From Macrostomum lignano (taxonomy: Eukaryota), in NCBI GenBank assembly GCA_002269645.1, contig NIVC01002404.1:113495-177494 (forward strand): a stretch of DNA of 64,000 bases. The letters are read 5' to 3'. Made by a program: the position numbers and the translations under genes. Below, piece by piece: positions 13,676-46,558 of the stretch (positions are counted from its first letter, which is position 1; each line of letters opens with the position of its first letter). The notes beneath the pieces are model-generated. The model had not been told where the DNA came from and did no database searches. It worked only from the letters and a program-made list of their open reading frames with translations.

Positions 13676-13711
<36 letters not shown>

Positions 13712-17846: not shown

Positions 17847-17911
<65 letters not shown>

Positions 17912-17912
17912 T

Positions 17913-17967
<55 letters not shown>

Positions 17968-18120
17968 CTAAGACAGACAGACACTAAGACAGACAGACAC
18001 TAAGACAGACAGACACTAAGACAGACACTAAGACAGACAGACAGACAGACGCCCAGACAAGACAGACAAACACTAAGACAGACAGACAGACAGACACCCA
18101 GACAAGACAGACAAACACTA

Positions 18121-18172
<52 letters not shown>

Positions 18173-27194: not shown

Positions 27195-29864
27195 TTAATT
27201 GTGCTCAAAATCAATATTTGAAAAGGGAATATTATTCTCACGATAGTCGATTTCCTCTACGCTAGCTCGAGCAGAGCTCTCCTCGGAGAGTCCGCTGACG
27301 AGGGAGAGCTTGTGCGCGTACTGGTTGGTCTCCCAGACTCCGTCATGACCGTCATGTTGCTGTTGATATTCGCTGAATACCTCAGCGCGAGCCTCCGCCT
27401 GGGGATTGTAGCCACGTCGGAGCTCCTGCTGGGCTACCTGGTAGGTGCGCTCGGATTCTCTGGTTGCCATGCGGATGCCGATAGCTAGGCCGACGAGCAG
27501 CAACAGCGATACAACAGTGACTGCCAAGATTTGAGCGCTAGCGCCAGCTAATTGATTCTGAGAGGCCTGAGGCTGTTTTAAGCTCAGCGCCACCGTGAGG
27601 TCCCGCAGCTGGTCATCGGCATCGAAGTCGGTGGAGTAGAAGCACAGAGAGTCCTGTCGGCAGTCGTAGGCGAGCACCGATTCCCCAGGAACCACTGGCG
27701 GCTTTCGCATCTCCAGGCTACCGAGACTCACGGATGGCGGATAGCGCAGGTTGAATACCGGGGTGACATTCTGACGGTCAGCGAGTTCCGGACCAAGAGA
27801 CGGGTGGATCCAGATGGCCACTCGGCCTCGAGAGTTGTCAGTTTCCAGGGTGCAGGCCGACCTGTCTTGCAGAAGAGGGGAGCGGGGGAACAACGGTCGC
27901 GAGCCCAGCTTGAGAAAGAGTTGCAGCTCAACGCCAACTCTGTTGAGATAACTGATTATTTCATCCGACAGACGGAACTCAAAAAATGTGCCGTTGTTTT
28001 GATTCCAGCCTTGTGCGGAGCAGATGTCAGTTATATTAATGATAAAATATTGTATTTTTAGACTTCTGATAAATACAACTTCACTGCCAGAACTTCTGAT
28101 ATAGTAATCTGAGGCGCCAATCCTTTGTGATTCGGAGGAGTTCACGGAAGCTTTGCACTCAAAATGGTGACTGAAGTTGGTGCCCAGTGATGGATTAGCT
28201 GGGGGAACGCGAATCACGTCCATTGACAAAGTTTTACTTGAAGTCGAAGTTGAGGTCGTAGTCACGCTCATCCAATTGTCTCCACTTGAAACCTTCTGGC
28301 GAAATGCCTCATCTGTTAGACGGTCCCACTTCACCTTGTCGTTACTAACAATAGGCATGTAGAACGTTGGCTCCAATGCGACCGACTTCAATCCAGAAAA
28401 CGTCACTGTACAGCTGTAGGACAGAGATCCACCCTCCATCGCGAACACCTTCTCAGGCAATAGACCGGAACTATCAGATTTTGGACTCCCGCCGTGGCCA
28501 AAATTCTGAGCGAAGTGCGGCATCGAGACCACAGTGATGTCAAACTCGAAGCGCTTTGATTCAGCCTCACATCTGTAGATCCCGGAATGAGCACCGGACA
28601 CCGAAGATGTAAACTCGATGATGTTGCCAGTCTTTGACACTCGAATGCCATCCAACAGATTCCATTCCTCCTGCTGCGACGGCATCAAGGGTTTTCCATT
28701 GCGATAAAACCGGTAGACCTCGCTCATGTCGCTACACAGAATGGGACAGACGATGGCATTGTTGTCCATGCCGGTCATCAGAGTCACTTTACTGGCAACG
28801 TTCGGCACTACTTCGCAGTTTCGAGACACCACAGTGCTGTTACAGCCCAGGTATGAAACTTCTCCTAGAGGAATTCTTAGTCTGACGGGACCAGTGCTCA
28901 CGTAGGGCTCTGAGTCCCCAGTGACGGATGCGATGGTACAAATTCCGATTGAATATTGAGGCTTGCAGTCTTGAAAGAAAAGCTGGATCTCTCTGCTTAG
29001 GCCGCATGTTGAAAACCAGAGCTTGCCGTCTCTCAAATTCAGGTATAGCAGCTTGGCGTGGTTTTTGTGCATCGAATCCATTTTTGAGTGATAATTAACG
29101 ATGAGAATGGACTTGCCCAGCTGGTAGGTGATGCAAGATGACGAATCGAAGTACAAAATCATGCCCAAATTGAGCTTCGCCCTGAGAAACTCCGGCGCTT
29201 CAGCAACCAGTCCGACGATCTCGGAGCTAAGAAAGTCGACGCTGGAAAAGGTATCATTGTTGCTGAAAATGTTGGTGGCGAATCTGGTTGCATCCCGGGT
29301 GAGAAAGCTGGGAGTGACCGAGTTCGCATCGACTAGCGCCCGCGAAGGGACAGCCGTGATGGGATCGAGGTTCCAGATGCGCAGCGGTCTGGACACGAGA
29401 AGGCCGGTGGAAAACTCTACTCGGACGAGCAGCTCCAGCGCTCCCTTGAACACGTCCTGCCGAGCAAGGCCGGACTGCCCGATGTACAGACTGTAGTCTA
29501 CGCGGCTTCTGTCGCTCAGCGATATCCTGAATGGTAGAGAATCTGGGCAGCGAGTTGCCGCAGTGACGGCCGCTCCAACCGAGCCAAGGTCGACCGTGTC
29601 CGAGACGGCGGACTTCGGACACCGGAAAATCAACAGGCGCCGCAGCCCGACGCCCGTGTCGCCGTGCACGCGCAGCCGGACGCCGATTTTGTTGCCGGCG
29701 CGAAGCACCGCCATAGCGTCGGAGTTGCCAACCTCCCAGACGTCGTCCCAGTTAAGTAGCAGCTTGGCAGATGAGGTGCACTCGAAATATGGCGCTCGAG
29801 ACCAGCTGTTAGCTGGGTAGGCTGCGAAGCAGAGCAATGCAATCAATAGCAGGCAGTTGTTCAT
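27195..29864 (-). CDS. Intronless type I membrane protein, paralogue 1 (~889 aa): signal peptide, unknown Cys-containing region, two Ig-like domains, TM, short tail
   Basis: Uninterrupted ORF 27195-29933. The likely start is Met24 (MNNCLLLIALLCFAAYPANS). Ig-like motifs IVCPILC...YRFYRNG...HSGIYRC and SLSYSC...HFEC; TM ILAVTVVSLLLLVGLAIGI. Colinear with two downstream paralogues. Confidence 0.92.
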   Translation of the reverse strand: MNNCLLLIALLCFAAYPANSWSRAPYFECTSSAKLLLNWDDVWEVGNSDAMAVLRAGNKIGVRLRVHGDTGVGLRRLLIFRCPKSAVSDTVDLGSVGAAVTAATRCPDSLPFRISLSDRSRVDYSLYIGQSGLARQDVFKGALELLVRVEFSTGLLVSRPLRIWNLDPITAVPSRALVDANSVTPSFLTRDATRFATNIFSNNDTFSSVDFLSSEIVGLVAEAPEFLRAKLNLGMILYFDSSSCITYQLGKSILIVNYHSKMDSMHKNHAKLLYLNLRDGKLWFSTCGLSREIQLFFQDCKPQYSIGICTIASVTGDSEPYVSTGPVRLRIPLGEVSYLGCNSTVVSRNCEVVPNVASKVTLMTGMDNNAIVCPILCSDMSEVYRFYRNGKPLMPSQQEEWNLLDGIRVSKTGNIIEFTSSVSGAHSGIYRCEAESKRFEFDITVVSMPHFAQNFGHGGSPKSDSSGLLPEKVFAMEGGSLSYSCTVTFSGLKSVALEPTFYMPIVSNDKVKWDRLTDEAFRQKVSSGDNWMSVTTTSTSTSSKTLSMDVIRVPPANPSLGTNFSHHFECKASVNSSESQRIGASDYYIRSSGSEVVFIRSLKIQYFIINITDICSAQGWNQNNGTFFEFRLSDEIISYLNRVGVELQLFLKLGSRPLFPRSPLLQDRSACTLETDNSRGRVAIWIHPSLGPELADRQNVTPVFNLRYPPSVSLGSLEMRKPPVVPGESVLAYDCRQDSLCFYSTDFDADDQLRDLTVALSLKQPQASQNQLAGASAQILAVTVVSLLLLVGLAIGIRMATRESERTYQVAQQELRRGYNPQAEARAEVFSEYQQQHDGHDGVWETNQYAHKLSLVSGLSEESSARASVEEIDYRENNIPFSNIDFEHN

Positions 29865-32800
29865 TTTTGACACTGAAATTGCAAACAACTGTTGCTCATT
29901 AGTAATTTGAAATAGTCGTGATTGCAACTGCATCAGACAATTTTAGGGTTAACCTAAATAACCTAAAATTGTCCTAAATATAGAACTGTACATGTTTTTA
30001 ATCATAATTGATTTAGCCAAATTTATAAACTTAAACATCTGATATGAGCCTGAATATAAAAGTGTTCATCGAGACTGTAAAAATACTAATTTGTTTATAA
30101 AAAAGACACAAATATTTTCCTATTTCATTCATAAGTATTTAAAAGTTTTTCGAATACGAAAATACATATTGTTGATAATTTTTTGTATTTCTAATCAAAT
30201 TATTTTTCATTATTCAATAGAAATGTGCTATTAAACTTATAACAAGTGAGTACTCTTAAAACAAAATTAAAATCCCTACGCGAAGGAAAACACATGACTT
30301 TATTGTAGCTTTATTAACAAAAATGTTAAAAACTTTCTATTAACTCATCATAAAATCTCTGTAATAGATGAAAATTAAAAAGTGTATATAACAGTTAATT
30401 TATATTTATTTAATGATTAATAAAATCGCTAAATAATCTGTAAATAAGGATGTAAAAACAGCAGAAAGGTATACAGGTTGTAACTGGACTCTTTTAAAAA
30501 ATTCTTTTTTTCACGTATAATACTTTAATACTTAATATAATATTTTAATAGTTCTATCCGATTCCTAAACTCTATTTCATTAAACGACTCAAATTAGTCC
30601 GAGTTGTTTTGAATTAGTTCCATTTCTTATTACGAGAAATCTTAACAAAACATCGTGTTATTTACATAAGTTAAATATTTATATAAAAAAATGTAGTCTT
30701 ATCTACTTATAATATTTATATCAGTTTTAGTCATATCTGCCATTTATACTTGCATACAAACACGCCCAACCAATAAATTACGGATGACCTCTGTAGAATA
30801 ACGTTTCAATGGTTTTTTTGATTGATTAAAAAGTACGAGAGTAATCATACGCGTTCTCTTCAGCTCCTTTTAGTAACTGACCCGCGTTGTAGTCAGCGGT
30901 AAACAGAGAGGACGTATTCGTATCTATGGCGGTGAGAGGGAATCTCAGCCATCCTGCTGTTTACGCTGATAATTTCAAGCAGCGTCGACTTAAGTTTCCT
31001 CCTGATCCAGACTTCAGATGCAAGAGGATTTGGATGCAAGAGAAGTCAGTAACCTGTATTTGTGCAGCTCATATTTGCAAGGCGGGAGCTTCATGTATGC
31101 GAAAAAATTGGAGAACTTATTCTTATTTCCGTATATTCCACCAGCTTAAACGTAGTTATAAGCTATTAAACAGGTTTTCTATAGCTTGTCCTCTCTCTGT
31201 TTCGCTTTGGATGTAGCATCATGATATCTCAGCTGTATTTTAAACGGGGGCAGTAACATATGCAGGAATTTTGCGCCCACTCAGCCCCCAGTGAATACGT
31301 CACTGTGATGGGTTCCGACCTTCGGGCTCCTTGTTAGGAAGCTGTGACGTTGTCAGTTTAAGGTGGTCCCGAAAAGGGCCGTTGGACTGCTGTTCTCCAT
31401 AGTCATTCAACCCTTCAGTTTCACCGTTTCAACTAAACTTTTCCATTCGTTTATTGCGACGTTTACTTGTAGTAGTGCCCAACGATTTTGTGGCAATTTC
31501 TAATTCACTGTATATTTTGCTATCCTCTCTCGCGACCGTATAAAATTGGCACGATCGATAATTTTAAGTTCTCTCGCCAGCCAATGAAATCACTCGTGTT
31601 CGCGCTACCCCCCTCTGCGCTCTTTTATTAAACCCCCCCCCGCCTGGCGGCGGCTCCCTCTCCTGTTCCTTGTTTCCTTCCCTGCGGCCTCTTAGCTGTC
31701 TTATCTGTTTGTCTGGCTGCCTCGAGCCTCCTTATTTCTCACCACGGCCCTTCTGTCTGGGCCAGCCTGCTCACACACTTACTTGACTGTTTCACGCCAC
31801 GACCGACGCCAAACTCGCCACTACGTTTCACTGCCTTCACTGTGCTCATAGCCACTGCTCACGTCACGTCGCCATTGTGTCATTCGCCTGCCACTTGACT
31901 TCATATCCAAATTATATTCAACCCATTGTTGCAGCCGCCAGTGCCCAGAAAGCTATAGTCTGTTTATTGCCAGTAACAACCAAACTTAATACTGATATTA
32001 ACAATAAAGACAACTACGGCAGTTCCTGCCTTTATCGCCAAGTGCTCCGCTACAAAATCCGCTTTACAAGAATTGACTTCAACTTATTTTGGGACTAAAA
32101 CGGCCCTTTTAAGGGTCACCGCATAGCTGGCCGCTACGCCAATAACGTGACAAAGCCTTCGGGCCTCAGGCCTCAGAAATAAATCAATTAGAGTCCTGGC
32201 CCCCCACTCCTGTCAGATGGTCAGCCCCATGGTAGCTTGATCGTGTGGCGAGCAGTCTAGGTCCTATAGCTAAGAGAGGGACAGCGAGAGACAAGCAGGG
32301 AGAATTTTGAAGGTAGAAATTAGCTCATCCGCAGACTAAGCTAACTCGCTGCCACCAGCCCGTGCGTCCTGGCTCACCACACCGGGACTCTCGAAATCGG
32401 GCTTCCGACTAGAAGGGGCTTTGCGCTTACCTGCCAACTAGTGTCTTTTTGCTGTCTATCTCGAAGTCATAGCCGATGATAAGGGACACTGCTGGGACTA
32501 GATCGCATTGGCCATGCAGGTACAGAGGGGACTTGTGCAGGGGATTCTTGCAGTGGCGAGTCTATGGGGTAGCTACATGTACTATTACATTGCTAAATAC
32601 GAAGATATGTACTTTTGGCCTTCAACGCGCCAACTAGCCTCTCATAGCGCTGATGTTAGACTAACTCGAACTTCAGAGACCTCGCATGATTCATTACCCG
32701 AGCCGCTTGGCTAACCTAGAGTGCACAGAGTACATCTCCGGAGCCGATTCTGCACTGCTGGCAGTTTTGCTCACTGATTTGATTGATTGATCGACTGAGA

Positions 32801-34333
32801 ACCACCTTGCCATTGGTCCACTGTGACCGGCGCCTACTAGCTTAGCTACTCATCTGAGCCATCGGTGAACAAAGAAACAAAACCGATAAAAATAAATGTT
32901 AGATTTAACCTTCTCCTAAGATCACTTCACACTTCAGATTGAATTGGAGTTTTAGACTACTAGCAGTATTATTGAATGATTTCTGCCTCAGTAACAGCAC
33001 TACTGAACAAAATGAGCAAAAGTGTGCGCCTAATCCAGCTACTGAAACCGGGGACAGATAGGGGATCACCCAATCAAGCAAGTCTAGGTAGCCTCTCACC
33101 CAACCAATCAGAAACTCAACAGCCGGAGACCAGGTAATCCACAGTGACCGAATCGGCTTGATGCTCTGTAGCTGTAGACTCAGGATGATGCTGATACAAT
33201 CTTCGCTAATAGCTAGCAGGTGATGATCTTCGCTTAATGTTCGCTGCTGACGACCGGGGGATTCGTCCTTGATGATGATGGGGGGAAGTCGCAATCCGGG
33301 GATCAAGAAACGACGGTCGCGCTCCGGGAACCAGAAGTTGCGTGCTGGACCCGAGCAAGTGGGAGTCCGAGCGGGCCAAAACTCCGGTTTAAATAGCCGC
33401 CAACTGGACCGCAGTTTGTTATAATGGAACACGTCGATTCTGATTGGCCGAGCCGTTTTGTTAAAATGAGCGCTGAATTTTCTGATTGGCTAAGCTTGTT
33501 GCCACCCAGAATCACGTGACCGAGAGATCCTATCAGTTCCCACAGGGTCGTAAAAAGATGACAGGTGCGGCCATAAATCACTCAAAATCGCAACAAAATG
33601 ATTTATGACTTTTCGCGTCGGATTGACAGAAATTAATGAAAAAATATACATTAGAAAGCTCTTATTAAATAGAAAGTGAAGATAATGAAGAGAAATTGCT
33701 AATCGTTAATCCCAAGGTACTTTTAGGGGTAAAACGCATAGCTGTCAAAGCTGTCACACGCTTGAGTGAATCCGAACAATAGGCTCTGACCTCATAAATC
33801 TTGATGGCCTGTCAAAATGATGAGAAAAAAGCTACCGCCCGCATCCTCTCAGACCATCTGGCGCCCGTCTCAACACTGAGTGAGGCGCAGGTGGCTGTCA
33901 GACCAGCTTCGAAAGCGATGATTTATGACCCAAAAAGCAATGCCTATGTTATTATGACTACTAGTATGGCCAGACATTATATCTAGTATAGATTCTATGA
34001 CAATTTGCAGAAAAAGGATAAAAATGCCCCTTGCCCACTGTTAGTAGGCAAGTAAGTTTAGAGCCCATGTGCTAGCGCGGGATTTGGGAAAAAGTGCGTC
34101 CTCATCAACTGCATGACAGCCTTAAATATATTGAAAAAAAATCTGAAGAAAATGGAATTGTTTTCATCAATTTCTATAAATGCTCTATTCTGCATGGTTT
34201 CATATTCTGCTACAAGACTTCTTAGACGAGGAGGAGACAGCATTATTATTCATTCACAGCTAATTCAGCTGTCAGAAGAATGAACACTGAACAGTGTCAG
34301 TTAGATAGGAAGGCGAAAATCAACATTAAATTT

Positions 34334-34376
34334 ATGGCGACGCGTTTCGCACGAAACTGTGCATCTTCAAGCTAGG
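34334..34376 (-). ncRNA. Penelope-type minimal hammerhead-ribozyme-like motif (degenerate)
   Basis: The minus strand reads CCTAGC TTGAAGA T GCAC-AGTTTC-GTGC GAAAC GCGTC GCCAT: core, stem II, GAAA, palindromic ACGCGT helix III and a GUC site. Core C3 is U and stem I is weak. Confidence 0.45.
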
Positions 34377-35469
34377 TTTATTTTTGAGCGAAAAAAAACG
34401 AGTGAGAACGGCAATAAATACAAAATTTTTGGGGTTGTAAATTCAATCAGTATTTAATATTTGATATTCAATGTACAGTGGTGATGATGATGTTCCTAGA
34501 ACGTCTTGATGATGTTCCTAGAAGTAGAACTCGCTGCTCCGGAAGTAGCTAGATAGTACCGTTGTACTACCTATCGATTTGCCTGAAAAAAACCTAAAAC
34601 GTTAGCCTTAGACTTGGTAGGGTTGCTGCCACCTTGGTGTGCGGACTCGACGCGTCGGCAGAGTTGTCTATCCGTCACCTGAAATGAAATAACGAAGTCG
34701 CTCGGAGCAAGGCAAATCTGAAAAATGTCTCGACAGTTGATTGTTTCAAAATTGCTGCTCGAACCTGAAGAACCTGAAAATCCTGAAATGAGAGAGGAGA
34801 GCTCGGAGGCAGAGAGACAGCTCCGAACGAGGCCAGGCAGGACGACTCGAGGCTCCGCGCTGCTCCACGAATCTGGAGAAAAATGGCTCCCAGATGCTCT
34901 GTGTTTATAGCCGAGCGGGCCCCCAAAAGTCACGTGAGTTTCATGCGGTGAGCGCGTGAAACTTCCTTATTTGGTCCTCTGAATCATGCGAGCGAACGTG
35001 ATCCAAGGCCAACTTCCAAATAAGGTAAGCCTGTCACGCTGCTGTGGCGTGATTCAAGGTCAGATGCCACGCAAAACTAGCGTGCACAGTCACGTGCTTT
35101 TCTGTGCTAAAAATAGACTTGGGCGGATGAGTCATCCTGTTATGCCTCCTCAGCGCGAGTGGGAAGACATTGAGTGGAGCTGCCCGCGCCTGCTCGGGCG
35201 ATGAGTCATCGGGCAGTAAACACTTCGGCCCAGCACAGGGTAACTCTCTCTCTAGATCAGGTGGACTGAGCTGCTGTGCAGCGGAACACAGAACTCTTAG
35301 GAAAAGCTAGTGAATGCTGCTGAATAGCCAGTTTGCAGCCAGTCACTACACTAGCGAGTAGCGACGCAGATAAACGTAGGAAACGTAGTGAAAATTTCTA
35401 ATTAACTTAGCTGTTTGTTAAAACTAAGGTATAAAATTAGTTTTACGTTAAATTAAATCAATAATAATA

Positions 35470-36047
35470 ATTGATTACACCTGCCCCGATTGGGCCAGAT
35501 GTGCAACCGACAGCTCAACCGCAGCTATTGCGCGGCGTATCTGAAGGCTGCGTACGGCTGTTCAGTCCAAGGACTGGGGGTCGCCACAGTCTTAATTACC
35601 TCACCCTCACCCTCAATTACCTCAGTTAATGCTGGCACCCATTTTACAGCTGGGTGAACTGAAGCAATGCAGAGTTACGAGTGTCTTGCTCAAGGACACG
35701 AACTGTTCCGATTAGATCAGGGGCGTTGCATGGGGCAAAAGGTATGGAGGACATGCCAATGCTTTGTGCCCCCCCACCCATCCTTGTGACCCGTTATAGA
35801 AATCAATAATTTTGCTTCAGGCGATAAAATACAGTATAGCTCCTGCGGTGCCAAAATGAGTATCTGCGGCGCCAAAATGACCGCTGACAACACGAAAACA
35901 ATGTACACGTACATGTAGACATGTAGAATTCTTGGCTTTGTCCCCCCCACCATAAATCCATGGCGACGCTCCTGGTGTGGATCGAGAATCGAACCCCCGA
36001 CCTTTCAGTCGTGAATCCGACGCTCTAACCAGTAGGCTACAATCCCC
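35470..36047 (-). mobile_element. tRNA-derived SINE, copy B, interrupted by a MITE
   Basis: Full SINE body and tail, with the tRNA-like head at 35975-36047. Confidence 0.85.
35718..35974. mobile_element. MITE, same family as 3291-3667
   Basis: CAGGGGCGTTGCA...TGGCGACGCTCCTG terminal inverted repeats; shared internal sequence AGAATTCTTGGCTTTGTCCCCCCCACCATAAA. Confidence 0.8.
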
Positions 36048-37199: not shown

Positions 37200-39821
37200 T
37201 CACGACAGCTCCAGGTCGTCCTTACTGTGAACGGACACAATGGAAGCGTTCAGCATCTGCTTCGTGCCCACCACCGACTGCACAGGCGCGTCCTCATTGT
37301 CGGCGGCACCGGCCCTGACGTAGTCTTTGAAGGTTTCGTTCTTGGCCTCAGCTTTCGGATTGTGTCCAAGACGAATCTCCTTCTCCTCAACTAGGTAAGC
37401 CCTTTCAGGCGTCCTAGTCATGAGGTAAGCTGCCACCAGGCCAACAATCAAAGCCACACTGGCAGCGATGGCCACTCCGACAATCACAACCGAAGTTGAA
37501 GCGACTCCAGGCTCGGGTAATGGTGTATCTAGAAAGGCCAGGTCAACTCGAAGAAATTCAAGCCCATTAGATAAATCAAAGTCGGTGGAGTAAAAGCATA
37601 ACTTGTCCGCCCGGCAGTCTCTTTGGCCGAGAGCGACGCTTGGACTGCCGTAAGCACTTTTGTCGTGTCGAAGGTTTGTCAAAGCCGTTTTTGGCTGATA
37701 GCGGAAATTGTAAACGGCTGTAAGGTTTTTCCGTTTCTGCAGCTCATTCAAAACGCCTTTCTGAGATATTGGAAAAACTTCGTAAGTCAGCGTAAAAGTT
37801 TTAGCGTCAAATTTGATGGCAGAAGCATCTTTCACAAACAAGGTCTTCACATCTTGAAGAAGAAGATCGTCCAGCATTAAGTAACCAGAAACATCAACCC
37901 CGACGTCCCGAAGGTAGGCTGCGGTGCTTTCCGAAAGAGCAAATTCGAACTTGGCGCCATTCGAGACGCTGCATTTCTGAACGCTACAATTGTTGTTTGG
38001 GTTAATGAGAAAACTGTCCTTCGTCAGACGCTTTAGAAAAAAGACATCGGCACCCGTTTGAGTACGATACTCTGACATGCCCACCTGTGAAACAGACTCA
38101 AACTGATTAAGAGAAGCATTGCATTCAAATCGGTGACTGAAGTTGGTGCCCAGTGACGGATTAGCTTGGGGAACGCGAATCACGTCCATTGTCAAAGTTT
38201 TACTTGAATTCGAAGTTGAGGTCGTAGTCACGCTCATCCAATTGTCTCCATTTGAAAACTTTTGACGAAATGCCTCATCTGTCAGACGGTCCCAGTTCAC
38301 CTTGCCGTTACTGACCATTGGCATGTAGAACGTTGGCTCCACTGTGACCGACTTCAATCCAGAGAACATCACTGTACAGCTGTAGGACAGAGATTCGCCC
38401 TCCATCGCGAACACCTTCTCAGGCAACAGACCCGAACTTTCAGAGCTTGGAATTCCACTGGCTGCAGAAGAGTAGGTCACAGCAAAGTGCGGCATCGAGA
38501 CCACAGTGACATTGAACTCAAAGTGTTCCGATCCAGCATCACATTTGTATATCCCGGAATGAGCACTTGAGACGGAAGGTGTAAACTCGATGATGTTACC
38601 AGTTCTCGACACCCGAATGCCATCTATGACTGTCCACTCCTCTAATTGGGACGCATAAAGTGGGTTGCCGTCTCTGAAAAATCGATACATCTGGCTTTTA
38701 TCGTTGCACAGAATGGGACAGACGAGGGCGGTGTTGTCTATGCCGGCCATTATGGTCAAAGTTTTCTTAGCATTTGGTGCCACTTTGCAGGCTATAGACA
38801 ACATGGGACATCCGGAGTAATGGACTTTATCAATTGAATAGCGCTGATCTGCTTCCTGAATTTTTAAGTAGGGTTCAGATTCTCCTGAGAACGAAATGAT
38901 GGTGCAGATTCCAATGGTATACTGCGACTTCTTTTCATGATAAAATGAGGTAATCTCCTTTTTTAAACCGCAAGCACAAAAGTCTAAATAGCCGCTCTCT
39001 ACATCAAGATGCATTATTTTTTGAAGCTTTTGATGTCGCAAGTCGAATTTCGAGTAGTAGCTTGTAAACAGCGTGGCCTTTCCCAGTTGATTGTGCAAGC
39101 AGGAGCCTGCATCAAAGTACAGGCTTGAGCCTAGTGTTATTTTGCTCCTGACGAACTGCGGTGCATTTTTGACAAAGCTTGAAATTGACGATTCAATGAA
39201 GGGTACAGCTGGAAACTGGTCGTCAAGTGGGCTGGAATAGTTCAACCTGGTCATCAGCTCAATCGCGGCAGGAGTAAGAAATTTTAAATCCAATGCTCCC
39301 ATCTTTCCAACGCTAAATGCACCAAGTGGGTCAAAGTTGTACAGAAAGAGCGGATTGGACTGGATTGCCCCGCCAGACCATTCGACCCGCACAACGAGTT
39401 TCACTCTCCTGCTAGCCACCTGGGTATAGTGCACCTCTGAGGCTTTCATCTTCAGTTGAAAATGGTTCTCGGAGTTGCCCGCCTGTACAGTGAATGGAAT
39501 GGTATTCGGGCATCGATGTTCGGGAGACAAGCTCGATTGGAGAGTGTCCATGTCAATCATTTGGGCCTGGGATTGCGGGCACTCGTAAATTAGAACTCTT
39601 TTTAGGCCGCTTCCGCCGCGATCGCCGCTCACGGACACCTGAATGTTGATGTGCTTGCCCTCGGTGAGAATCGACAGCATGTTGGACGATCCGACCTCCC
39701 AGGTGTCGCTCCAGGAAAGCAACACCTTGCTGGACGGTGAGAACTGGAACCGCGGCATCTGCTGGGTGGCGAGCGTGCAACCGGAGACCAGCGCCAGGAA
39801 GAGTAGCGCCAAGAAGGCCAT
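37200..39821 (-). CDS. Intronless type I membrane protein, paralogue 2 (~873 aa)
   Basis: ORF 37200-39872. The likely start is Met18 (MAFLALLFLALVSGCTLA). Same motif series: LVCPILC, HSGIYKC, KVFAMEGESLSYSC, LCFYSTDFD; TM VVIVGVAIAASVALIVGLVAAYLM. Confidence 0.92.
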   Translation of the reverse strand: MAFLALLFLALVSGCTLATQQMPRFQFSPSSKVLLSWSDTWEVGSSNMLSILTEGKHINIQVSVSGDRGGSGLKRVLIYECPQSQAQMIDMDTLQSSLSPEHRCPNTIPFTVQAGNSENHFQLKMKASEVHYTQVASRRVKLVVRVEWSGGAIQSNPLFLYNFDPLGAFSVGKMGALDLKFLTPAAIELMTRLNYSSPLDDQFPAVPFIESSISSFVKNAPQFVRSKITLGSSLYFDAGSCLHNQLGKATLFTSYYSKFDLRHQKLQKIMHLDVESGYLDFCACGLKKEITSFYHEKKSQYTIGICTIISFSGESEPYLKIQEADQRYSIDKVHYSGCPMLSIACKVAPNAKKTLTIMAGIDNTALVCPILCNDKSQMYRFFRDGNPLYASQLEEWTVIDGIRVSRTGNIIEFTPSVSSAHSGIYKCDAGSEHFEFNVTVVSMPHFAVTYSSAASGIPSSESSGLLPEKVFAMEGESLSYSCTVMFSGLKSVTVEPTFYMPMVSNGKVNWDRLTDEAFRQKFSNGDNWMSVTTTSTSNSSKTLTMDVIRVPQANPSLGTNFSHRFECNASLNQFESVSQVGMSEYRTQTGADVFFLKRLTKDSFLINPNNNCSVQKCSVSNGAKFEFALSESTAAYLRDVGVDVSGYLMLDDLLLQDVKTLFVKDASAIKFDAKTFTLTYEVFPISQKGVLNELQKRKNLTAVYNFRYQPKTALTNLRHDKSAYGSPSVALGQRDCRADKLCFYSTDFDLSNGLEFLRVDLAFLDTPLPEPGVASTSVVIVGVAIAASVALIVGLVAAYLMTRTPERAYLVEEKEIRLGHNPKAEAKNETFKDYVRAGAADNEDAPVQSVVGTKQMLNASIVSVHSKDDLELS

Positions 39822-40984
39822 GATCTGGACATTGGACGGACATGAGTGAAATATGCATTGAAATATTGGCACCCTATAATTCGATTATTGCAAGCTTAAT
39901 AGTAAAGCCAACTGCAGTTATTTCACTAATATTCGCTAATTAAAGTTTTTAATGAACTTAATTTTAGTTTGGCAATAGAATAACTATCTCTACAGCACAA
40001 ATATTGAGCTAAATATTTGCGTGCACGTTACATCTAAATTAATAATATATCGAAAAAAGAAACGTTTTTTACTTACAAATACCGTGACGAACTGCAGGTA
40101 GTTATAGAAGCAACTAAAGCAGAAGATTGATTCAGATTTCGACCGTTTTTGCTGCAACTACACGATTCGGGTCTAGCTACATAGCAGTGTGCCAAAGGCG
40201 CAAGCTTTAAATTCGTGCCGATGCATTTTTAAAATAAAAATGGAATGATGTCTTAGATTAAAAGAATTATTATAGAGAAAATATAACAAATGAAAATTCA
40301 CTTATATGATGTAAATGTCAGACTTCTTAGAAAATTTGTTATGCCAGAAGGAAGTTTATAAAACGATTTAAAACCGGTAACAGTATTTTACGTTACGAAA
40401 TGTTTTCCACAGTTGCATGACAAGCCACGGTATAGTGAAATAACATTTTCACTTTATTTCCATTACTTGAAATTAAAATGTCTTTTTAGCTACTTGAAAA
40501 AAGTCTTGAATGAAAATCCAAGTCCATGGTGAACAATTGTTGAAGCCAATGGCTCGACTACGTAAAATAGCTTACCTGGTATCTACAATAAAGACGATTA
40601 AATATTATACCATTCAATCGCTGACTCTAACTTTACATGTACAATTGTTGAAAAATTCTGTAGTGCAAGTACATTCCGTACACAATGTACCAATAGATGA
40701 AGTAGCATGCTTACAAGAATCTGCAAGGCACTAATCGACTCATTGATTCTTATTGTTCTTACAACACTGACAAGCTTGCGCGTGCAACACAGGCGATGAG
40801 CGAAATACATAGAGCGGCACTGCCATACAAAAAAAACGGCTTCCAACGTCTATATGGATGTCGCTGGCAAATGAGTACTTTTGCAGTGTACCACCGATCA
40901 CATTCGGCTGACGTAATACCCGTATAAACACTAACTTGACAGCGACGTCCTTCGACATACTGTCAGCACGGCACTGTAACGCCC

Positions 40985-41110
40985 CACCGGCCTGCTCAAC
41001 TGTCCAAGCGACCTGTTGCGCTATCGATCACATCAACTAACAACCGGTGCAACAGCTAGGTGCTACGGCTGACGACACGCGCGCACTCGGCCTTTCGTCG
41101 ACTGGCTGAC
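40985..41110 (+). mobile_element. Older decayed remnant of the same RTE 3' region
   Basis: GTCCAAGCGACCTGTTGCGC and GCGCGCACTCGGCCTTTCGTCGACTG match 42041-42200. Confidence 0.6.
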
Positions 41111-41644
41111 AATCATAACAATATGATTGCCGTAATTGTTCGTATCTCATTAGGGAGTCAGATCGAACACTTACAAAGAAGGCTGCCAGTAAGCCTTAAA
41201 GTTTCCTTCCAAATCTTGTGAAAGCTCAGTTTATAATCATATTTCGAATAGCGATGCAGTCAACAATAAATGCATATTATTTCCTATACGAGCGTATCTA
41301 CGAGATTTTTTCGTGGCTAAGATTGGCTTTACTGAATTTTTCGATGAGGAAGCGAAAAAATTGGTTGACTGCTATCATTACAAAAGTGCGGAGTATACTT
41401 CAAGTATTACAATTCGTCTGTATATTACACGTTGCTTATTTTCAGTTACCAAATTGCCGATTTCTCACCTGGGGGGGGGGTCTGCTCTAAACTGCTGTAA
41501 GTTCTATGGTGAGTTAAATTGCTGTGTAAGATCAGTATTACGCCAGTTTCTCTCTTTGTCGTAAGTACAGTTGGATCGAGAAAGAAATCGTCCATGGACA
41601 TAAAAGAGTGGAAGAACTTGAGGTCTTTATAGCTTATTAACGGA

Positions 41645-42320
41645 GAAGACCGTCGTGCTGTGCGTGCCGGACGACATCGAGGCTGCTATCCTATGCCGAG
41701 GCGCTGACGGACAGGCAACGGAACTTCCGCGATGTCAGCAGTTCGTCTACCTCGGTGGTCTGGTCCCTGATGTACGCAAGGATCTGCGTCGTCGCCGCGG
41801 GCTTGCCTGGGCTGCCTTCCGCTCTGTGAGGGCGGTCCTGCAGTCTGAGGCCCTTCCGGACCGCCAGAGGGCGGCGCTGTTCCAGGCGGTAGTCGAAACC
41901 GTCCTGCTTTACAACGCCGAGACTCGACTCGCTCGAACATCAAGTCGACGCGGCGCACGCTGGCCTGCTGCGCACCGCCTTCAAGATCAGCGACGAGCGA
42001 GTCACCAACGCGGCACTCTATCGCCGCGCCGGCCTGGCCCGTCCAAGTGACCTGCTGCGCCGTCGGCGACTCCAGCTGGCAGGTCATATCATCCGCGCCG
42101 AGTCGTACTGCCCACAGCCGGTGCAGGAGGTGCTGCTGCTCAGGCTGCAGGCACCCTACCGGCGAGGACAGGCGCGCACTCGGCGTTTCGTCGACTGCCT
42201 GCTGGCTGACGCCGGCGCCCCGGACTCTGACGGCGGAGCGGCCTATGTTTGCACTCTAGCCTTGAGACGCGCCCTGTGACACCAGAGACTATCCAGTGTA
42301 CTTTGTTGTTGTTGTTGTAA
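41645..42320 (+). mobile_element. RTE-clade LINE 3' fragment
   Basis: QQFVYLGG, AVVETVLLYNAET and RRRLQLAGHIIRAESYCPQPVQ; (TTG)n tail at about 42303-42317. Confidence 0.9.
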
Positions 42321-42362
42321 CGGAGAGAAGTTACTCCTCTAATTAATAATCAATATTGCAAC

Positions 42363-42626
42363 GGCCAGATGTGCATCTGTGCATCTGATGTGCAGGCGCA
42401 TCTGAAGGCTGCGTACGGCTGTTCAGCCCAAGGACTGGGGGGTCGCCACACACACAGCCTCAATTACCCCAGCTAATGCTGGCACCCATTTTACAGCTGG
42501 ATGAACTGAAGCAATGCAGAGTGAAGTGTCTTGCTCAAGGACACAAATTGTTTTGAGTTGGGTCAATAATCGAACCCCCGACCTTTCAGTCGTGAGTCCG
42601 ACGCTCGAACCACTGGGCTACAACCC
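42363..42626 (-). mobile_element. tRNA-derived SINE, copy C (uninterrupted)
   Basis: Same consensus as copies A, B and D. Confidence 0.85.
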
Positions 42627-43990
42627 TTTTCTTATCTCCAGACGAGAAGTTTGTCGACCCAGGAAACTATTCGACAATGCCAAAGGTAAAATGGGGATGA
42701 ATTGACGTAAGTAAGACCTCCAGGACTTACAACCATCATAAATTGAAACTTTAAACGAAGGAATATTTTTGCTAAGCTACAGGGTTCCATTCTTGCCAAA
42801 ACATCTTGAAGCGATTTGGGATTTCAAAAAAATATATAAAAATATTTTCAGAAGTTTGATGTCATTTACTGGACCAATGCTCCTTGATGAGCGCCGATAT
42901 GGCAAATTTATTTGATAATCCATGTAATATTTTCCGATTACAAATTTTAAGCATTGAATCCGGTTTAGGAAAAAAGGCACTTGAATATGAGTCATTTTAA
43001 TACTTGCTATAGACTATATCTAGACATATATCAGGTCAAAAATCAGGTACAGCCAATAGTTCAATTCAGTCAGTTTGTTAAAAAAATAGTGCGTTATATC
43101 AAATCTAAATCGTACTGATTGAGACTCATTGGTTAGTGAAGTTTGTGTATAAATAAGTAAAAAATACTTGATTTGAAATCGGGAATAACAAAAAGCAAAA
43201 AAGTGAGATTATCAAGATCAGCGTGATTTGAATTGTTTTTATTTAATCACAGTCCAACAATAAAACTGCATTTTAAAAATGCAGCCCAACAGGAAAGCTT
43301 TACACGACGGTTAGAAAATGAGCGCTTAAAGCCAAGGCAGAAAAATGATTGATCGATTGGACCCAACTGATACTGGCAAAGTGCCAGAGATCACATTGTA
43401 AGCTGTTGACATTCAGACCATAAAATTTTGGCAATTCAACAGAAAAGAGATTCATTCAAATATTTTAAATATCGAGTTAGGGCCATAGTAGAAACAAAAA
43501 CAACGAATTTGTTAAATACACAGCATTTCGGTAAAGGTTATAATTAATTAAAAAAACAACTAATTACAAATTATTCAATGTTAACAGCAGTATAATAGCA
43601 GCAGAAGTAATAAAAAGTTTGGTCAAGATTTGGAGAAAGCCACAGCCTTAGGCTGTACAAGAAGTGGAGTTCAATGCGATTTTTTGAAATTCTGAATTAA
43701 AAATGGAATGAAAGCATCTACAATATTAATAAGGCGACAAAAAATTAAATAGCTCGTAATTTAGGAACCAAGTCTGCAGCAAATGTTGATACACGTCAAG
43801 TCAAAGCTGAAATCACACCTGATCAGTCTGCTCCACCTGAATGTTCTCTGGGGCGGCCACTGCTTGGTCAGGTCCTACGCTCTCTGGAAATTAATTATTT
43901 TAGCCACGTCTAGCTGCGATTCTGTCTACTTATAAATTAATTTTAGTAGTAGAATACGAATATTAGGTTAACAAAACAGAGTAAAAGTTT

Positions 43991-46558
43991 TTACCCACCA
44001 TACATAAAACTGGAATTATCATAAGCTGTGCCGCGCATCTCAATGTCGTCTCCCCTCATCCCCGGAGCCTCTGACTGGCGCACATACTCTTTGAACTCTT
44101 CATCTTTAGCCTCCGCATTTGGATTGCGCCCCTGTTCCAGCTCCTTCTCCTCCAGGGCGTAACTCTTTGCCGGTTCGCGCTTGGCAAAGTAGACAACAAG
44201 TACAACCAAGACAATGATTAGCACAACACAAACGACAATAACCACTATCATTATTGTCATGTTGGCGGTCGACAGTGGCGGCTGCGGTTTGTTGAAGTCC
44301 AGAGTGACGGAAAGGAAGCTCAAGCTGCCAGAGACATCAAAGTCAGTCGAGTAAAAACACAACGGATCTGTGCGACAATCTTTTGAACCGAGAGCGACAG
44401 TCGGTGACCCGTAGCGACCCTTCTGAATTTTCGCATTGCCCATTTCGGACCCATTTCTATACCGAAAGTTGTACACCGGAGTCAGGCTGCTTCGCTTCTG
44501 CAGCTCAGTTCGAACTGCTTCATCCGTGATCGGCAATATCTCGTAACTGATGCTTGTCTTGTTCGACCTTATGATAGAAACGTTGCTGCTCATGAGAATC
44601 TTAACGTCAGTCAGTAGAAGATTGTCGATGCGAAGGAACAAATCCACATCCACTCCAATATAATTCAGGTAGGACAAGTACTCAAGACTAAGAGCGAAAT
44701 TGAACGTCGCACCGTTTCCAAGGTAACACTTTTGTGTTGCGCAATCATTATTTTCACCTAGAACGAAGCCCTCCTTTGTTGGTCGAGGGATGTACACAAT
44801 GTCACCGCCACTTTGTGTGCCATAGCTGGACATTCCCAAGTTTGCTGCATCGGTTCCTGACACTTTGGCATTGCACAGAAACCTGTGAGTAAAATTGTAC
44901 CCAAAGCTTGGCTGCTGAGGTGGTACACTTTGAATTGAGACATTCATCAGCTGAACTCCAGCTCCAACTGCTGGCGTGCTGATACTGACGGCTGAACTTC
45001 CACTGGGACTGACAAAATTATTAAAACTCGCCATACTTTGCTCAGTCCATGTCAAAACGCTACTGGACACGGAGGGCAGAAAGAACAGAGGCTGTAGCGA
45101 CACTGCTGAGATGAGACCCGAGTATGTTACTCCACAGCTGTAGGACAGACTCTCACCCTGCATGGCGAACACCTTTGAGGGTACAGTGGCGCTTTGACCA
45201 CCAATACTCGCTGAGAATGTTGGCATTGAGACAACCGAAACATAGTAGGTAAAGCTGGCGCTCCCAGCGATACACCTGTACTCACCGGCCTGGCTTGACG
45301 TGACATCTTTGGAAAACTCAATGATGTTCGAAGTTCTCGCAATCCGAACACCTTGCGCTCCAAAGTCGCTCCAGTCAGAAGAAGCTGGTGGTATCAGCTT
45401 CTGCCCATTTCGATAAAATGTGAACGGAGTTGCTGAATCAGCACAGACAATCGGACACACCAACGGAGTGTTGTCCATGCTTGAATAGATGGTGACGTTT
45501 TGCTCGGTGTCTGGCACTAGCATACAATTTCCACTCCGAGATTCAGAACAGGACGAATAAGAAAAATCTGAGCTAGGAATTCGTTCTCTTACGGCACTAA
45601 TTTTTTTATATGGCTCAACATCGCCTGAGAAGGAAACTGACAAGCAAATGCCGATTTCGGAAGGAGATCCTCTTTCTAAATATAACTGATGGACTGCATG
45701 GTGCAACTGACATCTCGAATACCAAAGCTGCCCAGTTTTTCGGTCGAGGTACATAGTCTTCATTCGAGTCATTTGGACACTAGTTATCTTGGAGTCGTAT
45801 GTGGTGAACATGTATGCACGGTCGTACTGAACATTTGAACAACCACTCGGATCAAGATATAAAATCGCGCCCAAATTCAGCTTCTGTCTGAAGAACACTG
45901 GAGCAGACTGGACTGCAGACACTAGCCGGCTGTCCATAAACTCGACGCTGTTGAACTCTCCCGATCCTAAATTCATTCGAGTCAGCAGAAGAATTGAGTT
46001 CTCTGTGAGAAAGCGCCGATCATATCCGCTAGGACTTGACGAACTTGCCGGAAAGTCACTGATAGGGTCCAAGTTCCACATTGTCAGGTTGTTGGACATC
46101 AAAACTCCACCAGAATATTCCACCTTTGCGGTCAGGATCACGTTAGATGAAAACACGGTGGAATAGGTTAGGTTAGAGTCATACATTTTCAGTTCGAATT
46201 CGTCACTTGTGGCTGTGGCCCTCAGTTTGAATGCGATGTCTGAGCTACATAGCGGTGATGTTGGACTAGTAGTCACAGATGCCAAGTCAATTGAATCCAC
46301 CGAGGTCTTTGTTGGGCAACCATACAGAAGAGTTCGCTTGAGACCGGATCCGCTGGCCACGCCATCAACTCGAATTCTGAGTGTGATTTTGCTGTTTGAG
46401 CTCAGAAGAACCATGGAGTTCTGTGTTCCAGCTTCCCAAACATCATTCCAGACAAGAAGCAGCTTGGCAGACTGAGAATAGACAAAACGTGGCATCTGTT
46501 CACCTGATGCAGAACAAATTAGAAGGCTTAGTAGCATCAACAATATAAGCTTCATCAT
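43991..46558 (-). CDS. Intronless type I membrane protein, paralogue 3 (855 aa)
   Basis: ORF with signal peptide MMKLILLMLLSLLICSASG, LVCPIVC, QAGEYRC, KVFAMQGESLSYSC, LCFYSTDFD and TM IMIVVIVVCVVLIIVLVVLVVYFA. Confidence 0.93.
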   Translation of the reverse strand: MMKLILLMLLSLLICSASGEQMPRFVYSQSAKLLLVWNDVWEAGTQNSMVLLSSNSKITLRIRVDGVASGSGLKRTLLYGCPTKTSVDSIDLASVTTSPTSPLCSSDIAFKLRATATSDEFELKMYDSNLTYSTVFSSNVILTAKVEYSGGVLMSNNLTMWNLDPISDFPASSSSPSGYDRRFLTENSILLLTRMNLGSGEFNSVEFMDSRLVSAVQSAPVFFRQKLNLGAILYLDPSGCSNVQYDRAYMFTTYDSKITSVQMTRMKTMYLDRKTGQLWYSRCQLHHAVHQLYLERGSPSEIGICLSVSFSGDVEPYKKISAVRERIPSSDFSYSSCSESRSGNCMLVPDTEQNVTIYSSMDNTPLVCPIVCADSATPFTFYRNGQKLIPPASSDWSDFGAQGVRIARTSNIIEFSKDVTSSQAGEYRCIAGSASFTYYVSVVSMPTFSASIGGQSATVPSKVFAMQGESLSYSCGVTYSGLISAVSLQPLFFLPSVSSSVLTWTEQSMASFNNFVSPSGSSAVSISTPAVGAGVQLMNVSIQSVPPQQPSFGYNFTHRFLCNAKVSGTDAANLGMSSYGTQSGGDIVYIPRPTKEGFVLGENNDCATQKCYLGNGATFNFALSLEYLSYLNYIGVDVDLFLRIDNLLLTDVKILMSSNVSIIRSNKTSISYEILPITDEAVRTELQKRSSLTPVYNFRYRNGSEMGNAKIQKGRYGSPTVALGSKDCRTDPLCFYSTDFDVSGSLSFLSVTLDFNKPQPPLSTANMTIMIVVIVVCVVLIIVLVVLVVYFAKREPAKSYALEEKELEQGRNPNAEAKDEEFKEYVRQSEAPGMRGDDIEMRGTAYDNSSFMYGG

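Follow-up and report, generated by a model that had tools for sequence, protein, structure and literature searches.

Three tandem genes on the minus strand of a 64-kb stretch of Macrostomum lignano DNA (the window, analysed at its full length) are predicted to encode single-pass proteins whose transmembrane-proximal tail is, by profile comparison, the cytoplasmic domain of L1CAM, neurofascin and NrCAM (Bravo_FIGEY). The first-pass annotation had placed these genes in an unrecognised family. As judged from the tail, the family is instead a lineage-expanded offshoot of the known L1CAM family and not a wholly new type of receptor; the earlier description does hold for the architecture of the ectodomain, for which Pfam and PDB sequence searches find no family. 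Our preferred reading, which we consider probable, is that the cluster arose by old tandem duplications within a Macrostomum-expanded, L1-tailed group of the immunoglobulin superfamily (IgSF), its products serving most likely as cell-cell adhesion or recognition receptors.

Organisation of the cluster

The window matches M. lignano scaffold NIVC01002404.1 at 100% identity. Its list of open reading frames contains three co-oriented minus-strand frames of 912, 890 and 855 codons, here called g1, g2 and g3:

27195-29933, minus strand: g1 open reading frame, 912 aa
37200-39872, minus strand: g2 open reading frame, 890 aa as listed, from GTG
43991-46558, minus strand: g3 open reading frame, 855 aa

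They are the longest non-repeat frames of the window, the next longest measuring 435 aa. The gaps between them are 7.2 kb and 4.1 kb, and neighbouring genes, an MFS transporter among them, are multi-exon. Both g2 and g3 align colinearly with g1 over their whole length (45% and 35% identity, respectively), and each of the three has an N-terminal hydrophobic leader and, in a hydrophobic-window scan, one transmembrane (TM) segment after the motif DCRxDxLCFYSTDFD; all of them are thus predicted to have a signal peptide and to cross the membrane once in type-I orientation, a trait of the L1CAM family. Coordinates, colinearity, leader and single TM segment thus bear out the original description of three co-oriented, single-pass, Ig-containing paralogous frames in tandem. 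Its motif is likewise upheld by alignment of the three proteins (D757, C758, R759, D761, L763, C764, F765, Y766, S767, T768, D769, F770 and D771 are invariant), while the number of invariant cysteines is 15 instead of the roughly 14 given at first. Synonymous divergence (dS) is saturated between the cluster genes, which indicates that the duplications are old and do not represent a recent burst. Besides the tandem arrangement, paralogues are also dispersed elsewhere in M. lignano.

Gene structures and expression

Both g1 and g3 run past a 3' intron into a terminal exon, so that their open reading frames are not whole coding sequences. The features of g1 are as follows:

27242-29864, minus strand: g1 coding exon 1 (signal peptide, ~770-aa ectodomain, TM, proximal tail)
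28518-28814, minus strand: g1 central Ig domain (VCPILC ... GIYRCEA), from sub-threshold Pfam Ig_2/Ig_3 matches
28147-28786, minus strand: g1 side of the g1-g2 conversion tract, spanning the two Ig-like domains
27621-27665, minus strand: g1 membrane-proximal motif DCRxDxLCFYSTDFD, from alignment and motif scan
27483-27551, minus strand: g1 TM segment, from the hydrophobic-window scan
27144-27241, minus strand: g1 intron, 98 nt, GT..AG, phase 1
27031-27143, minus strand: g1 terminal exon, encoding (R)EYAEEGSFIGNYHTDGGRAPSLPQQLMRDNARYTES and the stop codon, from tblastn with paralogue and L1-like tails and a six-frame motif scan

Translation of g1 probably begins at 29864 with the Met of MNNCLLLIALLCF, the frame staying open to an ATG at 29933. 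A GTGAGA donor lies immediately after 27242, and both splice sites are kept at a duplicate locus (L001), where an 8-nt indel falls inside the intron and exon 2 carries one amino acid change. With the terminal exon added, the g1 tail comes to ~111 aa, beyond the 60-90 aa first assigned to the tails. EEGSFIGNY of this exon is the sole FIGQY-type motif found in the window by the six-frame scan. The gene is unannotated: none of four candidate forms occurs in the protein collection, which provides no evidence of its transcription.

The features of g2 and g3 are:

37200-39821, minus strand: g2 coding sequence, 873 aa, single coding exon, annotated start ATG 39821
38490-38786, minus strand: g2 central Ig domain, equivalent of the g1 central Ig domain
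38113-38758, minus strand: g2 side of the g1-g2 conversion tract, from blastn, codon identity and pS
37575-37619, minus strand: g2 DCRxDxLCFYSTDFD motif
37440-37508, minus strand: g2 TM segment
43999-46558, minus strand: g3 coding exon 1, 100% identical to an annotated M. lignano protein (P0002)
45221-45523, minus strand: g3 central Ig domain
44336-44380, minus strand: g3 DCRxDxLCFYSTDFD motif
44192-44260, minus strand: g3 TM segment; modelled helix at g3 residues 768-793
43884-43998, minus strand: g3 intron, 115 nt, GT..AG, phase 1, placed in the tail where g1 also has its intron
43814-43883, minus strand: g3 terminal exon, encoding ESVGPDQAVAAPENIQVEQTDQV and the stop codon, without a FIGQY motif

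The exact 873-aa g2 protein is present in NCBI from the same scaffold (P0057; gene call in L004), and the annotated g2 duplicate has an additional upstream 5' exon. The splice of g3 is the one used in its RNA-seq-derived GenBank model (P0002). The agreement of g2 and g3 with GenBank gene models supports their transcription, such models having been built by genome-guided assembly of RNA-seq data with a filter of RPKM >= 0.5 (PMC5730564). The g2 tail terminates at ...SKDDLELS and a stop codon, short of the FIGQY position, and neither tblastn nor a six-frame regular-expression search found a FIGQY exon 3' of g2 or g3. All three genes had been described as intronless, which is true of the coding sequence of g2 and not of g1 or g3, and all have intron numbers far below the average of 4.9 per gene for this species (PMC5730564).

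The cytoplasmic tail is of the L1CAM type

The spliced g1 tail matches Pfam PF13882 (Bravo_FIGEY) at 24.0 bits against a cut-off of 23.8, a margin of just 0.2 bits, over profile positions 6-84 of 86. Paralogues elsewhere, which carry GSFIGxY, match the same profile at E 5.9e-9 to 2.7e-16, and hhalign aligns the family tail to that of a canonical multi-Ig L1-like protein at Prob 99.3% and E 1.4e-20, with R, Y, E, G, P, E and F invariant in the tail alignment. Taken alone, g2 and g3 match the N-terminal half of Bravo_FIGEY only, below threshold (E 0.06-0.11). This juxtamembrane half, R..TY.V.EKE..G..P..EAK.E.FKEY, is present in all three cluster proteins, and the FIGQY-type motif near the C-terminus is found in g1 (as FIGNY) and in the paralogues P0003, P0005 and P0006, not in g2 or g3. 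Automatic UniProt labels of paralogues already name the L1/neurofascin/NrCAM C-terminal domain. That L1-type CAMs recruit ankyrin by way of their FIGQY region is established for neuroglian, L1 and LAD-1 (PMC2133023, PMC2173803, PMC2196473).

Sequence and predicted fold of the ectodomain

The ectodomain, of ~740-770 aa, is rich in Cys and N-glycan sites. Two Ig-like folds had been proposed for it, and two segments with Ig-type Cys spacing and context are indeed present (VCPI[LV]C...G.Y[RK]C.A and SYSC...H[RH]F.C.A), the first alone obtaining a Pfam Ig match, which is below threshold (E 0.0015-0.06). Pfam returned no fn3 match at E <= 1 in g1, g2 or g3, nor at E <= 0.1 in eleven family members; searches of PDB sequences with single sequences and profiles gave only TM noise and a contactin-5 Ig domain at E 0.47, and a BFVD fold search only generic Ig-like viral proteins. 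CATSPER auxiliary subunits, TMEM132, HAP2 and tectonic, considered as candidate families, are absent among the Pfam matches listed at E <= 1.

An AlphaFold2 model built from an 11-sequence alignment, with residues numbered by g3, reached a pLDDT of 78.7 and a pTM of 0.72; a model from the three window paralogues alone, at pLDDT 36.8, was unusable. The top Foldseek match in the PDB is contactin-2 Ig1-6-FN1-2 (E 2e-15), and the other best matches are the contactin-1/neurofascin-155 complex, axonin-1 Ig1-4, Sidekick Ig1-4 and DCC Ig1-4. The matches lie between E 1e-11 and 2e-15, with TM-scores normalised to target length of 0.47-0.54, at 8-12% identity and an rmsd of 8-20 Å, and may consequently reflect nothing more specific than a succession of Ig-like domains. 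The model shows an ectodomain predicted to consist mostly of beta-sandwich (Ig-like) domains, with mixed alpha/beta, non-Ig-like regions at ~180-330 and ~600-700 of g3, the membrane-proximal region included. As to a six-Ig ectodomain, what was found is one sub-threshold Pfam Ig domain, a second segment with Ig-type cysteines and a beta-sandwich-rich model with matches at 8-12% identity.

Relatives in M. lignano and other flatworms

All distant relatives come from an exhaustive HMMER search that covered 1.84 billion representatives. The ectodomain was found in M. lignano only, in six full-length cluster representatives and four divergent tail-less ones, in agreement with the lineage-specific expansion first suggested. 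At least one tail-less form has a hydrophobic end, possibly a signal for a GPI anchor. Word-indexed protein searches with g2, the 11-member alignment or the fluke and tapeworm ectodomains returned self or near-self clusters only.

The tail, by comparison, occurs in fluke (Opisthorchis, Clonorchis, Calicophoron) and tapeworm-like proteins of ~800-880 aa that have a weak Ig match at ~330-410 and a Bravo_FIGEY tail, for example Opisthorchis viverrini T265_05326 (881 aa) and proteins of Calicophoron daubneyi (883 aa) and Mesocestoides corti (804 aa). These Neurofascin/L1/NrCAM C-terminal domain-containing proteins resemble the Macrostomum family in length, leader, TM segment and tail, and in the succession of ~330 aa without a Pfam assignment, a weak central Ig and ~300 further unrecognised residues. 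In segment-wise hhalign the central Ig is the sole ectodomain segment to match them (Prob 94%, E 1e-7), the others staying at the level of reversed-sequence controls. Comparison of full profiles gives Prob 76% over 108 columns for the central Ig, and a greedy alignment keeps the two groups colinear through 630 columns at Prob 83%. N-terminal motifs that by eye seemed common to both groups (G.[IV].SN..., C..[DQE].C) were unsupported against reversed controls. Similarity to the Macrostomum family is significant in the central Ig and in the tail; segment by segment, the rest of the ectodomain has none, and there is apparently one or a few such genes per fluke or tapeworm species, judged from few database entries, against an expanded family in Macrostomum. 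No canonical long L1 of M. lignano is among the 25 tail matches listed, which is weak evidence of absence. We found no relevant literature on the gene identifiers, on L1CAM in Macrostomum or other flatworms, or on run SRR6291255.

Purifying selection and gene conversion

Measured against one ~96% identical duplicate locus, dN/dS is 0.31 for g1 and 0.40 for g2, and purifying selection acts on both genes. In this comparison 11 of 12 windows have a ratio under 0.65; in one 150-codon g1 window it is ~2, on very few changes (dS 0.010). The comparison, which is with a duplicate locus and not between individuals, gives no sign of diversifying selection, and the earlier suggestion of a self/non-self or gamete-recognition role is unsupported by it.

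Between g1 and g2, blastn detects 82.9% nucleotide identity over 649 nt (88-97% in the core) and no nucleotide similarity beyond. Within this stretch the proportion of synonymous differences (pS) falls to 0.19-0.44, from 0.6-0.9 elsewhere. Read from the sequence, these values show a gene-conversion tract over two Ig-like domains. The ectodomains had been described as strongly diverged; most of their length is, but not uniformly, given the 83% identity of g1 and g2 in the 649-nt stretch.

Discussion

According to the model that we propose, each protein would be a type-I membrane glycoprotein made up of a signal peptide, an ectodomain, a DCRxDxLCFYSTDFD stalk, a single TM helix and a cytoplasmic domain of the L1CAM family, and would be located at the cell surface, where the ectodomain may bind in trans or in cis by analogy with L1, neuroglian and LAD-1. 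The FIGNY sequence of g1, a variant of the canonical motif on its own terminal exon, would recruit ankyrin and hence the spectrin skeleton. Loss of the FIGQY-type motif would leave g2 and g3 uncoupled from ankyrin, and within this proposal the paralogues would therefore have diverged in function. Against an explanation in terms of L1-type adhesion, it should be said that sequence similarity of the ectodomain to its L1-family counterparts is confined to one Ig domain, that no Ig, fn3 or PDB sequence match rises above threshold, and that the sole copy in the cluster with an ankyrin motif, g1, is unannotated and has a tail that passes the cut-off by 0.2 bits.

With the L1CAM family (L1, CHL1, NrCAM and neurofascin of vertebrates, neuroglian of Drosophila and LAD-1/SAX-7 of C. 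elegans), the cluster proteins share type-I topology, a homologous Bravo_FIGEY tail with its conserved juxtamembrane block, a FIGQY-type motif in g1, P0003, P0005 and P0006, at least one Ig domain, and neurofascin and contactin-type Ig chains as best structural matches. They differ from it in an ectodomain of ~750 aa as against ~1100 aa in which six Ig and FN3 domains are not detected by sequence, in the mixed alpha/beta segments and family-specific stalk, in the missing FIGQY motif of g2 and g3, in a nearly single-exon coding sequence, and in the many paralogues of M. lignano, one gene being typical of invertebrates. Foldseek matches the model best to the N-terminal Ig1-4 regions of contactin, axonin-1, Sidekick and DCC (TM-score ~0.5), but contactins are GPI-anchored and lack an L1 tail.

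A possible but unlikely alternative is that these are the flatworm orthologues of L1CAM and neuroglian themselves, in which a six-Ig plus FN3 ectodomain has diverged, shortened and multiplied, the fluke and tapeworm proteins being their low-copy counterparts. The like layout of those proteins in length, weak Ig at ~330-410 and Bravo_FIGEY tail, the alignments of the central Ig (Prob 94%, E 1e-7) and of the 630 greedy columns (Prob 83%), the prominence of L1-relatives and contactins among the top fold matches, and the lack of a canonical long L1 among the 25 tail matches listed are all consistent with it. However, the non-Ig segments of the ectodomain do not exceed reversed controls and give no fn3 signal, a list of 25 matches says little about the absence of a canonical L1, and the tail may have been gained by exon or domain shuffling. 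A broader proposal, which we offer tentatively and rate no higher, is of a platyhelminth-wide L1-type branch with a new or remodelled ectodomain, low-copy in flukes and tapeworms, whose at least 10 Macrostomum paralogue types (tail-less, or with or without the ankyrin-binding exon) would form a combinatorial recognition repertoire partly homogenised by gene conversion.

We regard as improbable, more so than either of these, a fast-diversifying self/non-self, gamete or mate-recognition locus at which diversifying selection and conversion shuffle variants. An ectodomain detectable in M. lignano only, a tandem array with dispersed paralogues, strong divergence of most of the ectodomain together with a conversion tract, and the single g1 window with dN/dS ~2 would all suit such a locus, but the overall ratios of 0.31 and 0.40, with 11 of 12 windows below 0.65, the old duplications implied by saturated dS, and a tail of the L1 cytoskeleton-anchoring type instead of a signalling ITAM/ITIM type argue against it. 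The Hydractinia Alr cluster and the clustered protocadherins, with which the cluster had been compared, are likewise tandem, diverged, single-pass surface proteins with large exons. Unlike the clustered protocadherins, the cluster genes have no cadherin repeats or shared constant exons, each having a separate tail and stop codon, and the only protocadherin match in the Pfam scan falls on the TM region (E 0.04-0.06); unlike both kinds of locus, they have an L1-type tail and show no sign of diversifying selection in dN/dS against the duplicate locus.

A processed retrocopy is expected to have no introns. Retroposition followed by tandem duplication, assumed at first and suggested by an uninterrupted 2.6-kb coding exon in each gene where the genome averages 4.9 introns per gene and neighbours such as the MFS transporter are multi-exon, is largely refuted for the present gene structures and in our estimate very improbable, given the phase-1 intron at a matching tail position in g1 and g3, the intron just before the FIGQY exon in P0005, P0033 and P0006 (the last, with two more, being the most intron-rich paralogue found, at 3 coding introns) and the upstream 5' exon of the annotated g2 duplicate.

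On our preferred reading of old, L1-tailed adhesion or recognition paralogues, the cluster is no new kind of system, and nothing was found that points to allorecognition or gamete recognition. If the reading is correct, an L1-type ankyrin/spectrin module would have been kept while the adhesive ectodomain was replaced or remodelled and then multiplied in one lineage, and the possible fluke and tapeworm counterparts would be uncharacterised surface-type proteins of potential relevance to parasite biology. The family would then be a natural experiment on the evolution of adhesion specificity apart from cytoskeletal coupling, and, as M. lignano is transgenic and amenable to RNAi, paralogues with and without the FIGQY exon are directly testable.

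A tandem array of three paralogous genes

With tandem-repeat artefacts set aside, the longest ORFs of the window belong to g1, g2 and g3, three tandem minus-strand paralogues encoding Ig-containing type-I membrane proteins.

Features of the three genes
27195-29933, minus strand: g1 ORF, 912 aa
Donor GTGAGA after 27242, acceptor TTTCAG before 27143, minus strand: g1 intron, 98 nt, phase 1
27143-27031, minus strand: g1 terminal exon, placed from splice-site sequence
37200-39872, minus strand: g2 ORF, 890 aa as listed, 873 aa from the ATG at 39821
43991-46558, minus strand: g3 ORF, 855 aa
43998-43884, minus strand: g3 intron, 115 nt, phase 1, at the same tail position as in g1

A colinear alignment spans all three proteins in full, with the other two 45% and 35% identical to g1. 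They have 15 invariant cysteines and an invariant membrane-proximal DCRxDxLCFYSTDFD motif in common, and every one of them begins with a hydrophobic leader, carries 7-10 N-glycosylation sequons and ends in a single TM segment followed by a short tail. The feature is genuine, and the first-pass annotation described its ORFs, cysteines, motif, leader, TM segment and tail correctly.

From 33813 to 56099 the window matches M. lignano scaffold NIVC01002404.1 (assembly GCA_002269645.1) at 100% identity. The 873-aa form of g2 and the g3 protein match GenBank entries exactly, and since the GenBank models derive from an RNA-seq-guided transcriptome (PMC5730564), both genes are transcribed. Four candidate forms of g1 found no counterpart in the GenBank and UniProt protein sets. 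NIVC01001317.1 carries a second copy of the g2-g1 pair (locus L001), ~96% identical including intergenic DNA, in agreement with the 180 Mb of duplicated blocks of at least 95% identity in the M. lignano assembly (PMC5730564). The g1 duplicate there (L001 16916-19801) has no gene call; its ORF and splice sites are intact, as are those of the window copy (27031-29933). For the g2 duplicate, the 'partial' GenBank model P0001 splices an upstream exon to the main ORF (L001 10001-10120; window 40020-40177), so that g2-type transcripts probably have a 5' UTR intron. The g1-g2 spacer is ~7.2 kb in the window vs ~3.6 kb in L001 (window 31305-35359; L001 15129-15523); the two copies therefore differ by an indel, with several additional kb in the window.

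An L1-type tail on a lineage-restricted ectodomain

Pfam searches with the three proteins gave a sub-threshold Ig at about residues 380-460, matches near the TM segment and nothing else, and PDB sequence searches with the family returned no match. Of the 25 matches from an exhaustive HMMER search (1.84 billion representatives), ten cover the ectodomain, all of them from M. lignano. Six of these are full-length (E at most 1e-230), two being g2-like and g3 itself and four representing further paralogue groups of ~900 aa; the other four are divergent, 533-723 aa long and tailless. The remaining matches cover only the TM segment and tail, and include the canonical multi-Ig L1-like protein P0013 as well as proteins of flukes and tapeworms annotated as 'Neurofascin/L1/NrCAM C-terminal domain-containing'.

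Bravo_FIGEY, the Pfam domain of the L1CAM/neurofascin/NrCAM cytoplasmic tail, is found in the paralogues P0003, P0005 and P0006 (E 5.9e-9 to 2.7e-16) and matches the spliced g1 tail at 24.0 bits (cut-off 23.8) over profile positions 6-84 of 86, and aligning the family profile with the tail of P0013 in hhalign gave Prob 99.3% and E 1.4e-20. The aligned tails share the skeleton R..TY.V.EKE..G..P..E...F.EY ... DD.ELD.Y ... E.GSFIG.Y, complete in g1 and reduced to its proximal half in g2 and g3. Judged by these profile matches, the tail belongs to the L1-family cytoplasmic domains; what had been taken for an unrecognised receptor class is an L1-tailed IgSF family, probably of adhesion receptors, whose ectodomain is lineage-restricted.

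An AlphaFold2 model of g3, built from an 11-sequence family alignment, is confident (pLDDT 78.7, pTM 0.72).

Regions of the g3 model (AlphaFold2)
Residues ~22-165: all-beta N-terminal domain
Residues ~180-330: mixed alpha/beta region
Residues ~345-448 and 460-592: two Ig-like sandwiches bearing Ig-type cysteines
Residues ~598-700: second mixed alpha/beta region
Thereafter: stalk with the invariant DCRxDxLCFYSTDFD motif, then the TM helix

Its best Foldseek PDB matches were contactin-2 Ig1-6-FN1-2, the contactin-1/neurofascin-155 complex, axonin-1, Sidekick and DCC Ig1-4, and titin Ig tandems, with 8-12% identity for the top matches. The model predicts a string of Ig-like domains, which agrees with a relationship to L1 and contactin without proving it.

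The fluke and tapeworm proteins (788-883 aa) are laid out like the Macrostomum family, with leader, ~330 unrecognised residues, weak central Ig, ~300 further unrecognised residues, TM segment and Bravo_FIGEY tail. Comparison of ectodomain profiles with the family gave Prob 76% and E 2.3e-5 over 108 columns, which take in the central Ig and run into the following domain, and a greedy alignment was colinear (Prob 83%). When the segments were compared one at a time alongside reversed-sequence controls, significance was confined to the Ig pair (Prob 94%, E 1e-7). Because the other ectodomain segments remained at noise level, a flatworm-wide family is plausible but unproven. That these genes form a remodelled but true flatworm L1 orthologue group, a reading that overlaps with that of an adhesion receptor, we consider unlikely.

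Two divergent members, P0008 and P0048, also lie in tandem, at 10001-12255 and from 21488 onward in locus L005 (NIVC01000506.1). P0008 lacks the L1 tail and has a hydrophobic end (…LRLCAVLVLLSVSCTVLSDCFAC) that may serve as a GPI-anchor signal. The automatic UniProt name for one member of its 90% cluster, 'Macrophage-expressed gene 1 protein', is backed by no Pfam match to P0008.

Selection and gene conversion

Synonymous sites are saturated among the three genes, and the duplications are therefore old. Against the L001 copies, dN/dS is 0.40 for g2 (dS 0.056) and 0.31 for g1 (dS 0.037), which indicates purifying to mildly relaxed selection. A diversifying recognition locus would sit poorly with these values and seems quite improbable; dN/dS exceeds 1 in one 150-codon window only, where very few changes lie behind the value, and the earlier idea of self/non-self recognition is left without support.

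A 649-nt tract (28147-28786 in g1, 38113-38758 in g2) spanning both Ig-like domains is 82.9% identical between g1 and g2, with a core at 88-97%. The proportion of synonymous differences is 0.19-0.44 inside the tract vs 0.6-0.9 outside, and such closeness at synonymous sites speaks for gene conversion and not for constraint on the protein. L001 contains the tract too, which is thus older than the locus duplication.

Introns of the family

A tblastn search with paralogue tails located EYAEEGSFIGNY past the g1 stop, at ~27144-27106. The L001 copy of g1 keeps both splice sites and the terminal exon with a single amino acid change and has an 8-nt indel in the intron, as would be expected if the intron is real. 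The g3 terminal exon has 23 codons, and its splice is identical to the GenBank model. The g2 ORF stops just short of this intron position, and no FIGQY exon was found downstream of it; among the window copies only g1 has a FIGQY-type exon. The P0033/P0005 pair on NIVC01001207.1 is likewise tandem, each gene consisting of a giant exon and one intron directly ahead of the FIGQY exon, and P0006 has that intron and two further ones. Contrary to the first description, the genes are therefore not strictly intronless, although the family is intron-poor against the 4.9 introns that genes of this species have on average (PMC5730564). The family-wide recurrence of the intron argues against retroposition, so that the proposal that g1, g2 and g3 are retrogenes is without support and can be set aside as highly improbable.

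Other features of the region

Between g2 and g3 lies a 131-aa ORF (41655-42050, plus strand; …LFQAVVETVLLYNAETR…) without a Pfam match. By eye it resembles a non-LTR reverse transcriptase in its C-terminal part, and it probably represents the remnant of a decayed retroelement. Minisatellites (periods 4-99 bp) are densely packed at 3383-21805, where a 19-bp unit repeated 86 times (7565-9243) creates spurious ORFs of ~600 aa, and GC and AT skew is strong at ~16-22 kb. A 46-bp minisatellite (54206-56254, ~45 copies, 93% match) is presumably intronic, since it lies within the span of an annotated MFS-transporter gene (L004 1-6332, window 56099-49768, minus strand). An exon-sized ORF at 1684-2133 (minus strand) matches Pfam Propeptide_C1 (E 6e-12) and the start of Peptidase_C1 (7e-15), identifying it by homology as belonging to a cathepsin B-like cysteine protease gene. 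Adjacent minus-strand ORFs of 435 aa (58342-59649) and 243 aa (57449-58180) have no Pfam match, the former containing a 30-bp tandem repeat (x13, 58780-59166), and 62988-63641 has a weak 7tm_1 match (E 0.007).

Proposed function

In L1, neuroglian and LAD-1 the FIGQY region recruits ankyrin. We think it reasonably likely that g1, g2 and g3 are surface adhesion or recognition receptors comparable to these proteins. Because of this role of the FIGQY region, g1 would be linked through its FIGNY motif to the ankyrin-spectrin skeleton, and g2 and g3 would not.
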